Source: Utricularia gibba (taxonomy: Eukaryota > Plantae > Magnoliophyta). From it: a stretch of 64,000 nucleotides of DNA. The position numbers were made by a program, and so were the translations under genes. The notes beneath the pieces are model-generated. The model saw only the letters and a list, made by a program, of their open reading frames with translations, was not told the DNA's origin and ran no database searches. Shown here piece by piece: positions 24,287 through 29,269 of this stretch. The DNA lies in the NCBI GenBank assembly GCA_002189035.1, contig NEEC01000014.1:1116001-1180000 (forward strand), given 5' to 3'. Positions within the stretch are counted from its first letter, which is position 1, and every line of letters starts with the position of its first letter.

Positions 24287-25429
24287 TCAGCAACCACCAC
24301 CGCTTGCTGGCTCAATTGAGCTCAAAAGACCATTGCCTCTGAGCTGCATACAATGCTCCTCCGCATCAGCTTGTGCACAGATGATCACAACTGACATGCC
24401 GTTGTGGTGTGCTTCTTGCATGATATTCACAGCATTGTCAAGTGTCATCCCTGGTATAACCTTCATCAATACTTGCACCACATACTCCCTTTTATTATAG
24501 TTGTCATTATGCAGAAGCACACGGTACGGCGGTGATGTCTTCCTTGACTTCCTGCATCACAGAAAACTATCCTGTTAAAGAGTCTGCGGTGATCAAGCAG
24601 AGCTAATTTTGTATTGAACCAAAGGCTGATGGACACAATGCATGACAGAATACACTTGCAATAGGTGTTCTCAGACAGTTAATACAAAGGGTAGGCTTGC
24701 GATGCTGGAGATTAAAACAGGCACAGCATACCACAGATTACATAGAATGTTCCAACTGATGCAAGGGAAGGTAGAAAAAGGCCCAATACGCATACCTCAA
24801 ATCGAATTCGGATTCACGACCCGGGGTTGGTTTCTCTATTGCAGGTTTCTCCAGAAGGCCTCCTCCTTTCCCAGAACCGGCAACTATCTTTGCTATCAAA
24901 GCACTGCGATTCGAAAACCGTGTATGAAGAGGATATCTCTCCCTGAACACACACAAAGTGTCTATCATAAGAGAGCAAGATTCTGTCATACTGAAACCAA
25001 TGCGTAGAGCTACATCTGCCACAGAAAATTCTCAATGACAGCACTTAACACTTACAACCCAGGCTTAGAGTTGAGGAACCTTGGATTGCTCATAGATAGG
25101 TTAGAATGAACAGGTTCTGTTGCAAGCTATCTAATATTCTAACGAAAAACTGAAGTTCAACAATTCAACATCCATGAACAACAGAGACATGTTTGCACCC
25201 GAAAAAACGCCTCAATCAACCGGAAACTCCTAATTCTGCAACAACGAGTCTCAATCGGAATACTGAAGAAAGAGTAAGATCAACAATTCGAATAAAACCC
25301 AGGCACTACACCGCAATCCTCCCAACAACAATCAAACTCTAACAACCAAACACGCAGGTTACCAGACGGCGGGTTCAAAACATGATTCGGAGAGAGCGCC
25401 ACTCTTCCGCAGCCGATGACCGTCTCCAT
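24287..25429 (-). CDS. CLPS1: Chloroplast Clp protease adaptor ClpS1, 3 exons
   Basis: METVIGCGRVALSPNH..GGGLLEKP..TPGRESEFDLR|KSRKTSPPYRVLLHNDNYNKREYVVQVLMKVIPGM..SIEPASGGGC*. The exon 2 acceptor appears one G short. Confidence 0.93.
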
Positions 25430-26059
25430 TCGCCGGAGCACACGATCGCCACAAACCACGCGCAGATTATTATATTATTTAGTATTAATTAACATTTTTG
25501 TTAAAAAATCAGATCTCGACACGTATCCTTCAATTTATCACAAAAACTAGGATACGAAATTCCACGTGTATAAATCAGAAAAACCTGAAAACTATAAATA
25601 TTGGCATTAATTATGGGATTTGGACTCATTTGGGCATTAATATGTGTATTAAGCAGTAATTAATTTTAAATTTTAATGAAACATTTTCGACACGATTAAT
25701 AAATACTTAATTAATAATTTGATTAACTTACCAAATGTAAGACGTAATTAAAATAGAAAGTCTCTCTTTCTCTGACGAGTTAACAACGAATATTAATAAA
25801 AAAATTAAAAAAACATATTTTTGCAGGAGTCTCCGGATCCAGGAGGAGGAAACCCTACTGAGACACAAAATCCAAGGGCCAAGATTCTCCGACAACTTGA
25901 TCAGATCTTTCTCCCCAGTAAGGACAACCAGCAACCCATTTCCTGCTGCAAATCCAGATCCACACCCCGCAGAGAAGCTCATCCTCTGCAACCAAAACAA
26001 GCCACTCCGCAAAAAAGTCAATCCCATGGTTAAAAAAAGGAACACTGAGGGTGAGAAGA

Positions 26060-26173
26060 GTAGAGCTCCCTTCAATCCAAAGAAGGTTCAAACAAGAGGA
26101 ATCCATCCGTACAGCCACCATCTCCTTTCCTTCTGCTCTGCAAGAACCTCTTTTGGACTTTAAGGAGCTCCAC
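26060..26173 (-). ncRNA. MIR159: MIR159 precursor hairpin (mature miR159a 26061-26081, star 26150-26170)
   Basis: Exact TTTGGATTGAAGGGAGCTCTA on the minus strand. Complementary arm GAGCTCCTTAAAGTCCAAAAG. TATA-like TATATATG near 26427-26434 upstream. Confidence 0.96.
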
Positions 26174-27358
26174 TCTCAAACCCCAGAAAGAAACACAATT
26201 CCTTTCTTCCTACACGTTCTAACAAAGCGCTTCATTTCATTCTACAAACTGGAGTAAATTAAACAATCACAGCAGCAAACAGTAAAGCCACAGATCTAAG
26301 AAAGGGAAACCCTAGGAGATGAACCAGTCATGGAAAGGAAGCAGCAGGTCAGGGCTTGCCGAGAAGAGTAAAAACCCTAGAAAAAAAAACATGAGAACGA
26401 GGGAAGAGGGGGGCAACGAGAGGCCCATATATAGAAGAAGAAGATGAAGAAGACGACGATGACGACGAATAATAAATAATAAATTAATTCATTTCGGTTA
26501 TTATTACAATTTACTGCACTCTGTGAGGGTTCTCGGGAAACGTCGTCCTTTTTTTTATTTCTATTTAATTGATTAGATTCCCTTTTCACATGCGCGTGTC
26601 CATTGACTACCAAATATCACAATTCTTATTTTTAAATAAATAATAATTTTTCTTCACCATTTAACCATATTTTTAATTAAAATAATATACATGAAAATAA
26701 TTAATATTAATTCCTTCATTAATAGTGATCCATCATGATATCAAATGCAACAAAACTAAATATCATAACTATTACACAAATGGTGATATTTAACATTAAA
26801 TACATATGATGAAAGAGATGTGTTTAAATAGTAAAATCCTTATGATCTTGTATAAGATATTTTCTTCGAAAAAAGATAGCATAAAACTATATTATTTGGT
26901 AATTGAATTAATTTAAAAAAATGAGGAAAGATAAGAGCCATAAGTGATTAAACATTAATTATAAATGATTTTAAATTTTAAAATGAAGAAAAGTGATTTT
27001 AATATATTAATTTACATTGTAATCAAATAACGTAATTTATTATATACTTTTATTTTATAATTGTTTCAATTTAATACATAATTTTAAAATCCTGAATTTC
27101 ATTTTTAAATGAATCAATATTTAAAATAAGGATAGAAAAGATGAAAAACATAAAAACATAAAATGTAATTATATTACTTTATTTAACTCTTTGATGCCGT
27201 ACTACCCGTAAAAAGCGGGGACAGGAGAAATTGGTGCCCTAATGATATCATAGGGCCGTACGTTGTAAAACCTCAAAGAAATTGTAACAAAATAAATAAA
27301 TAAAATTAATTTTCATACTATTTTTAATAATTTGAATGGTAACTATCATTATTTAGAT

Positions 27359-27523
27359 CTTGTTTGGTTCGTGGATCTAGAAGGCTACTTACCGACCTAA
27401 GATTTTAAGATCTTGATCGGAATGAAATAGTTGAATACTATGATAAAACAATATGATAACGATTATCAAATATTTTTATATTAAACACAAAAAACATAAT
27501 ATTATTTTGACTAACCAAACAAG
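27359..27523. mobile_element. Tourist/PIF-like MITE remnant
   Basis: Perfect 11-bp inverted repeats CTTGTTTGGTT (27359-27369) and AACCAAACAAG (27513-27523), AT-rich interior, TTA on the left flank only. Confidence 0.45.
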
Positions 27524-27959
27524 TTTCATCTCAAATCATAAATCGAATAACTCACACCTTAATAATTCAATTTTGGATTTAACTCGTCACTTTAGATTTC
27601 TTGAGGATGATTTGCACAAGAGCATTTTTACTCGTTTTCGGAAATGCTGACATGGCATTTCTGATAATTGAGTTATTAGGTTTACTTTATTAAGTTTTCG
27701 TTACGTTTGTATTCATTTTCGAAAATCGTAATATTAAAATAAATATTATAAATTACATTTTAAATAAGAAACCCGATTTCCTCATTTCCGTTTCCGAAAA
27801 AAATAAAAATCAAGATTACTCATTTAAGTAACATTTAACTCATTTCTGGAAATGCCACATTAATATTTTTGGGAACGAATAAAGATGATCTAAATGTAAT
27901 TTTGAAAAAATGGGTTTATGATTTATCCGGCGTGACAAGGTGTACGTCGAGTGGCAGCT

Positions 27960-29269
27960 ATGGCTTCCTCCTTCCCTTATCTCTGTTTTACGCCTCTCAC
28001 GGATTCTGTTTCCAAGCGCACTCTGATCGAGTCCGTACATCGCAGATCTTTGGGCAGTTCTCAGATTTCTCCCAAGCTCGTCTCCTCACGAGCTGGAGCC
28101 ACTCTCGATGACAAGGGCTTCTACGGGGACTCTGCACCGGTTCCTTTGCAAGAGGAAGCACTGCCCTATAAGGTATTCAGAAGATCCTAATTTATGCGTT
28201 GTCCGGAATTGGGTATGCTTTACCTCTTTTGATTTCTTCCATTGGGCCCCTTCCCTTGTTCGTTTCTTTAAAATGCGTGTTTACCTTGTAATGTAGGCTA
28301 GGTGTATGATGAAATGATTGAAGCTGACACGGGTTTAATGTATGCGTAAATTATGTTAAGGAAGTGGAGGAGGCCATACGTGTACTCAAAACCGCTGCGA
28401 AGACTAGGAAAGTTGAGGCGAAGGAGATTCTTGGAGCTTTTTCTGTGATTGAGAAGGCAAAGCTTGATTCTGTTGGCTTTCTTGAGACACTTGGAGGAAC
28501 ACAGTCCCCTGGACGAACATGGATGCTTGTTTTTACTGCAGAGGTCAGGTTTCTCCGCTGTTCTCTATCCTCTATGTTCCATTCGATAATTCTTCTACTC
28601 CCACTTTTGATCAACAGAAAAAAATGGACAGTGGAAAATACTTCCCAATCACCGCTGTTCAGAGATTCGATGCTGCTGTAAGCTTCTTCTTGTAAATCCA
28701 GTTCCTGTTCTTATCTCCAGTTCTCCTAGAGATCGCCTCAATTCCAATATATATTCAACCGAAATTTGTGCTTGTGAAAATGAAATGTCCATTGTGTTTC
28801 TGTTTTGGGCCACTTCTGTTATTACTAATTGTCTCTACCCCTTATCATATTTACTGATTCTGACATCATAAGCAGCTTATTTCAACTTCTCCTAGACAAT
28901 CAAACTCATCAGTAGTTCTCTGCCTGACATATCCCTGGAAGTGTGTAACACTTTTTGAAGTTTCGGTTTTCATGGTGCAGGGAAGAGAATTGAGAATGGT
29001 GTGTACCTAGGTGCTCTTGGGAGCCTAACCTTTGAGGGGCGATTTGCATGGAAGAAGAGAATCCTCGCATTCGTATTCGAAGAGATTCGAGTAAAACTGG
29101 GACCATTTGATCCCTTAAAAGTGCGCTTCAACAGCAAAGATACTGAAAGGGAGCCAGGGAACAAGGATCCATTCTTCATCTGGTTCTATGTTGATGAGGA
29201 GATTGCTGTTGCTCGTGGCCGCAGCGGGGAACTGCTTTCTGGGTTCGTTGCCAACGTATAGGAGACTGA
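27960..29269 (+). CDS. Conserved plastid protein, fibrillin-like (At1g18060-like), 4 exons
   Basis: Transit peptide; LGGTQSPGRTWMLVFTAE, YFPITAVQRFDAA, IENGVYLG, DPFFIWFYVDEEIAVARGRSG. One missing G at 29226-29229 restores GTAFWVRCQRIGD*. Confidence 0.8.

Follow-up and report, generated by a model that had tools for sequence, protein, structure and literature searches.

The MIR159/319 family is the textbook example of plant precursors processed from the loop to the base by multiple cuts, and few features of any plant precursor outside the miRNA itself are as conserved as its upper stem and the distance between miRNA and miRNA*. Four cuts are made in these precursors, along ~80 nt of imperfect dsRNA made up of the miRNA and the stem above it (PMC3787264; preprint 10.1101/129684). 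Short loop-to-base precursors that are cut twice have a structured terminal region of ~42 nt, a small loop and no structure under the miRNA, and the signature of base-to-loop precursors is a lower stem of the length described below (16 nt), then a large internal loop (PMC3787264). Shortened forms of the family are not new as a kind: Li et al. 2011, who catalogued 278 stem-loops of MIR159/319, already recognised shortened or degenerate forms (types 2, 4 and 5), and described type 2 as 'shortened ... probably due to deletion' (PMC3118147).

The locus reported here lies on the minus strand of a 64-kb stretch of Utricularia gibba DNA (the window), and its hairpin is ~60 bases shorter than the MIR159 of other plants. 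The mature miR159, UUUGGAUUGAAGGGAGCUCUA (26081-26061), agrees with the canonical sequence at 21 of 21 positions and sits on the 3' arm, its near-canonical miR159*, GAGCUCCUUAAAGUCCAAAAG (26170-26150), sits on the 5' arm, and no other miR159-like site was found within the window. The two are separated by 68 nt, the distance that the first-pass annotation had read directly from the letters; the hairpin, which it put at 114 nt, measures 110 nt from the start of the star to the end of miR159. All structures given here are thermodynamic predictions. Folding 26040-26190 (minus strand), as that annotation had suggested, gave one unbranched, stable hairpin (-66 kcal/mol, z = -4.4, none of 200 shuffled sequences folding as well), and when the 662-nt transcript was folded whole the hairpin was kept, with pair probabilities mostly of 0.7-1.0.

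The predicted anatomy can be followed from the base upwards. A 12-bp basal helix is formed by 26198-26209 and 26032-26043 in the fold of 26020-26213, and the 5' strand keeps a low unpaired probability in the 662-nt context. Above it is an 11x1 internal loop, whose 11-nt single-stranded side (26187-26197) has unpaired probabilities of 0.75-0.97 in the full pri-miRNA fold, then a lower stem with 16 nt in each arm (26171-26186 on the 5' side, 26045-26060 on the 3' side). The miR159/miR159* duplex follows, at a predicted -25.7 kcal/mol, with 2-nt 3' overhangs and the central 2x2 internal loop typical of the family. The upper stem (5' arm 26127-26149, 3' arm 26082-26101, pair probabilities 0.5-1.0 on the 5' arm) is modelled as a 1x1 mismatch, 7 bp, a 5-nt bulge (26139-26143), 6 weak bp, a 1x1 mismatch and 5 bp, which makes 20 rungs on the 3' arm, and it is closed by a terminal loop of 25 nt (26102-26126) containing a weak 4-bp mini-stem. 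By alignment the 5' and 3' arms of this upper stem are homologous to the canonical 5' and 3' spacers respectively, and the terminal loop takes the place of the loop-proximal duplex and loop of long precursors.

To judge the shortness of the hairpin we compared it with 32 metagenome loci carrying exact miR159, 27 of which had a recognisable star and represent 15 distinct hairpins from probably few plant taxa. The spacing between star and miR159 in those 27 loci was 120-138 nt. A search of Rfam at gathering thresholds returned no match at the locus; with E-value reporting RF00638 (MIR159) matched it end to end at 56 bits (E = 2.7e-11), below the 74-bit gathering cut-off, with 25 nt standing in for 86 central model positions, whilst seven long MIR159 loci scored 106-119 bits against the same model. 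RF03483, the short MIR319e clade, matched the window weakly (37 bits). In a MAFFT alignment the compact and long forms are collinear and homologous from the 5' arm of the lower stem through the star into ~20 nt of 5' spacer, and again across ~20 nt of 3' spacer and miR159; between these segments ~26 nt here replace the ~85 nt of the long forms that hold the 5' conserved block, the loop and the 3' conserved block. The 3'-arm conserved block ACR3 (GCATATCT..GGAGCT) is absent from the hairpin when aligned with long MIR159, and of the 5'-arm block ACR5 just an ambiguous 11-mer, ATGGATTCCTC, is left. Alignment and Rfam thus agree with the earlier claim that the loop-proximal duplex is missing.

We considered whether the ACR5 block had survived and now served, by co-option, as one side (the 3' arm) of a newly formed upper stem. 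In tobacco, tomato and the hairpin L003 the core of ACR5 has exactly the letters of the 11-mer ATGGATTCCTC, and the match is significant against L003 (p < 0.002); against most hairpins it is not (p 0.2-0.4), and its TTCCTC, which lies in the 3' arm of the upper stem, is also collinear with the canonical 3' spacer, both in the alignment and in the spacers of L016 and L007. For these two reasons co-option is unproven and we rejected it.

The MIR159 shortness is real and unusual. A metagenome scan for the pattern of a star, 55-85 nt and miR159 found no compact MIR159, a scan for miR159 alone led to long precursors only, and a literature search with the hairpin's own sequence found no match. Two further metagenome sites carry the exact 21-nt miR159 with no upstream star (L009:307-327, over ~300 nt, and L019:5964-5984, over the only 113 nt before the contig end); they are probably chance or target-like sites and not MIR159 genes, because the star is missing and the L009 site lies in apparently coding-looking sequence.

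Compared with canonical type 1 MIR159 (RF00638, e.g. ath-MIR159a), the U. gibba locus has an identical mature miR159, likewise on the 3' arm, a star with the same central 2x2 internal loop, and homologous 5' and 3' spacers and lower-stem 5' arm. It differs in having no ACR5/ACR3 duplex and no long stem (68 vs. 120-138 nt, 56 vs. 106-119 bits) and in having a stronger lower stem, and with ACR3 gone and ACR5 reduced to an ambiguous 11-mer it lacks the 'bi-duplex' of ACR5 and ACR3 between star and miRNA by which type 1 is defined. It shares the lack of a loop-proximal conserved duplex with types 2 and 4 of MIR159/319, including the MIR319e clade (RF03483). At 68 nt it lies outside the miR*-miR distance of type 2 (<= 60 nt) and falls formally into type 4 (D > 60, no ACR, unbranched stem). 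No compact hairpin with canonical miR159 occurs among types 2-5 in the sequence file of Li et al. 2011, the entries there being members of MIR319, long hairpins (ath-MIR159c is one) or candidates of doubtful status; shortened hairpins are thus known as a kind, whereas the U. gibba variant is absent from the 2011 catalogue. The closest engineered counterpart is the Arabidopsis mir159a.13-mix (Imran et al. 2022, PMC9201385), in which the miR159 duplex and the middle duplex are kept and the loop-proximal miR159a.2 duplex is removed and which complemented mir159ab; unlike the U. gibba hairpin it is artificial and still ends in the terminal stem-loop of Arabidopsis, and the direction in which it is processed was not mapped. 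Base-to-loop precursors cut in two steps, of the MIR172a type (Bologna et al. 2013, PMC3787264) belong to unrelated families with variable, usually unstructured terminal regions, whereas the U. gibba hairpin retains a 20-rung upper stem; what it has in common with them is the predicted base-to-loop signature, a lower stem with a large internal loop.

The obvious artefact would be loss of the upper stem through assembly or sequencing collapse. We examined assembled contigs from four independent data sets: DNA from a second sample (X3) and from another study (X9), and RNA from two studies (X5 and X10). The DNA contigs of X3 (25057-27081) and X9 (24300-26165) span the 68-nt region without an indel, as do the RNA contigs of X5 and X10, so that all four cross 26082-26149 intact, and the chance that the short form is an assembly deletion, which the first-pass annotation had named among the results that would overturn its claim, is practically nil.

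The RNA contigs also delimit the transcript. X5 covers 25766-26165 and 26136-26387, and X10 covers 25726-26165, giving an apparently unspliced pri-miR159 that extends at least over 25726-26387, on the minus strand as judged from the hairpin and the TATA box, the contigs themselves being directionless. Both flanks are silent in X5 (24970-25640 and 26444-27900), and the RNA signal is therefore transcription and not DNA carry-over. A TATA box (TATATAT, 26427-26433, minus strand) is situated ~40 nt upstream of position 26387, where the RNA contigs have their 5' end. X9 is from a diverged accession that differs at ~25 places over the kb following the hairpin downstream, yet it has no difference in 25966-26183, where ~5 would be expected (Poisson P ~0.005), and the sole variant in the RNA, at 26128, replaces A-U by G:U in the upper stem. 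That the hairpin is invariant in the diverged accession while its flanks vary is evidence that it is under constraint.

A sequence present in both X9 (DNA) and X10 (RNA) matches 26136-26183 exactly and continues upstream into different sequence (plus strand TAAACCCCCATCTGATAAAGG...), and the shared 48-mer has ~2x the local depth in X9; the diverging sequence comes either from the second copy of MIR159 or from an allele in which the 5' region of the pri-miRNA is structurally different. Folded onto the 3' arm of the present locus, this variant 5' flank is predicted to form a lower stem of ~15 nt with different pairings.

The gene has transcribed neighbours on both sides. A spliced minus-strand gene at 24422-25406 lies only ~320 nt downstream of the 3' end of pri-miR159; RNA contigs join its 24550 to 24795 across an intron that reads CT..AC on the plus strand (GT..AG on the minus), and X10 also joins 24942 to 25362, a junction that is less certain because its ends are non-canonical (CT..TA) and one side is just 45 nt long. 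On the other side there is a further transcribed block at 27926-28173, and between these two neighbours the MIR159 gene occupies a gap of ~2.5 kb, a compact arrangement. The interval 26001-28000, which covers the promoter side of MIR159, has the lowest G+C of the window (0.30 vs. ~0.40-0.47 elsewhere). X3 contigs are missing from an AT-rich stretch at ~27114-27381, reads being apparently cut at the repeat 27285-27314. Contigs of X9 pile up within 27650-27783, with a word depth of ~530 over 27706-27765 vs. ~38 nearby, which suggests a short high-copy repeat in the X9 accession.

In the minimum free energy structure the 16-nt lower stem consists, from the duplex downwards, of 5 bp, a bulge, 2 bp, a 2x2 loop, 4 bp, a bulge and 3 bp, and a second fold, which has 7 bp and a 3x4 loop, differs little in energy; the two versions coexist, because pair probabilities at 26176-26177 are only 0.33-0.65. 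The length of ~15 nt proposed earlier is close (~16 nt), whereas the layout given with it, 7 bp, a 3x4 loop and 4 bp, is not that of the minimum free energy fold and exists beside it as the alternative. Within the 17 nt under the star 14 positions are paired, against 3-13 in the long MIR159 hairpins (12-14 compared), and the arm-to-arm energy of the lower stem is -13.5 kcal/mol, against -6.4 to -10.2 kcal/mol in 12 long hairpins, which makes it the strongest of the 13. Long MIR159 hairpins have structured lower stems too, though weaker ones, and that of tobacco has a 5' arm nearly identical to the U. gibba one, so the lower stem is inherited and at most tightened.

Set against the published rules, the predicted structure falls on the side of base-to-loop precursors. 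The 16-nt lower stem with the modelled 11x1 loop and 12-bp basal helix beneath it has the form described for them in PMC3787264, which bears out, at the level of structure, the base-to-loop mark that the earlier annotation had seen. Counted upwards from the duplex base, only ~41 rungs (21 + 20) precede the loop, against the ~80 nt of dsRNA used in four cuts from the loop, and the hairpin does not fit the two-cut loop-to-base form either, with its terminal region of 68 nt, its loop of 25 nt and the structured 16-nt lower stem. A distance of 16 nt from the junction of internal loop and lower stem coincides exactly with the base-side cut of canonical miR159, whereas 15-17 nt measured from the terminal loop would end 3-4 nt above the miR159 5' end. 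The duplex, at -25.7 kcal/mol, exceeds the ~17 kcal/mol needed by two-step precursors, a figure obtained by another energy method. Processing from the base-to-loop MIR172a backbone has been shown to work for a miR319 duplex (PMC11317159). Because the base-to-loop rule fits and the others do not, the 16-nt register is exact, the duplex is stable and miR319 works in a MIR172a backbone, we favour base-first, two-cut processing of the U. gibba hairpin, and give it an even chance of being the right description.

On this model the locus is a functional, Pol II-transcribed MIR159 gene from which, we infer, mature miRNA is produced. Its hairpin has lost the distal third of the canonical fold-back (~85 nt replaced by ~26 nt); what it keeps is the duplex of miR159 and its star, the spacer duplex in the middle and a lower stem that has been tightened. 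DCL1 would most likely recognise it as a two-step base-to-loop substrate. The first cut would be set by the junction between the 11x1 loop and the 16-nt stem and define the 3' end of miR159 and the 5' end of the star, a second cut 21 nt higher would release canonical miR159, and the remaining upper stem would be a tolerated relic.

The strongest competitor is that the loop-to-base order was kept with fewer steps, the canonical pathway of four cuts being naturally shortened to three or two; it might begin with a cut at the loop/stem junction ~21 nt above miR159 followed by two more, or with a cut directly atop the duplex guided by the upper stem. A shortened route of this sort is possible because engineered Arabidopsis MIR159a lacking only the loop-proximal duplex complemented mir159ab; the miR159 duplex alone did not (PMC9201385). 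The same result speaks against base-first processing, and so does the conservation of the MIR159 processing mode within the family in every species tested so far (PMC8688358). The upper stem points the same way, as it is homologous to the canonical middle duplex, measures about one DCL1 step in its ~20 rungs on the 3' arm and shows no difference in X9, and the lone variant at 26128 preserves its pairing. Base-first cutting is further disfavoured by the two bulges and the 2x2 loop in the lower stem, by the lower stems that long MIR159 hairpins possess as well, with a tobacco 5' arm almost like the one here, and by the reported dispensability of lower stems in MIR319a. A loop-first route would nevertheless have to start without a 15-17-bp guide helix above the junction cut, where there is just the 25-nt loop with its weak 4-bp stem, and a count of 15-17 nt from the loop would leave an offset product, 3-4 nt short of miR159. 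The 68-nt terminal region agrees neither with the ~42 nt of loop-to-base precursors cut twice nor with the ~84 nt of the register that we derived for one extra 21-nt duplex, and part of the upper stem is weak (pair probabilities 0.5-0.7). Taken with these points, a retained loop-first order seems to us somewhat unlikely.

The base-type determinant and the sizeable structured upper stem are both present, and a single precursor may be recognised from both ends, as described for example for MIR825 (PMC3787264), so that productive cutting from the base would be accompanied by some cutting from the loop, productive or abortive; this is the default position whenever two signals coexist, and we regard it as improbable. 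It is more improbable still that the hairpin is a decaying or poorly processed pseudo-MIRNA, a transcribed relic yielding little or no miR159. Li et al. 2011 did propose that stem-loops without the loop-proximal duplex may fail in processing (PMC3118147), and the Arabidopsis miR159a.1-solo construct gave no rescue (PMC9201385), but here miR159 is canonical at all 21 positions, the star retains the mismatch pattern of the family, the hairpin is invariant in a diverged accession with variable flanks, and the locus is transcribed in two studies. Moreover, a U. gibba small RNA study (PMC8333044) gives exactly two MIRNA loci, called by ShortStack, in which miR159 is the major RNA; one of them is only 116 nt long, which is about the span of the compact hairpin, and in the same study miR159 is one of five families that together account for 94% of miRNA reads.

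That genome compaction deleted the upper stem, as the first-pass annotation had proposed, is conjecture. A saving of ~60 nt is hardly selectable for genome size; a simpler account is that the deletion was tolerated because a usable lower stem was already present. If both MIR159 copies are compact, the deletion is probably older than the duplication that gave rise to them and was then maintained. Tentatively, and with somewhat less confidence than we place in the order of cuts itself, we suggest the following for an ancient miRNA family in which, from mosses to flowering plants, precursor length and loop-first biogenesis by four cuts are conserved: in this lineage the upper duplex that guides processing would have been lost and two cuts starting at the base would have taken over, a change fixed in both MIR159 copies, which would still supply abundant miR159.

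A naturally truncated, transcribed and constrained MIR159 is a ready test of which signal DCL1 chooses when both are partly present, and the compact hairpin offers artificial miRNAs of the miR159 type a natural backbone of minimal size. If the direction is unchanged, loop-first processing has a smaller minimal requirement than Arabidopsis deletion studies imply. If the direction has switched, processing mode is evolvable even for an essential and ancient miRNA, and a switch in both copies would be a natural demonstration that the recognition modes of DCL1 are interchangeable in evolution for an essential miRNA.
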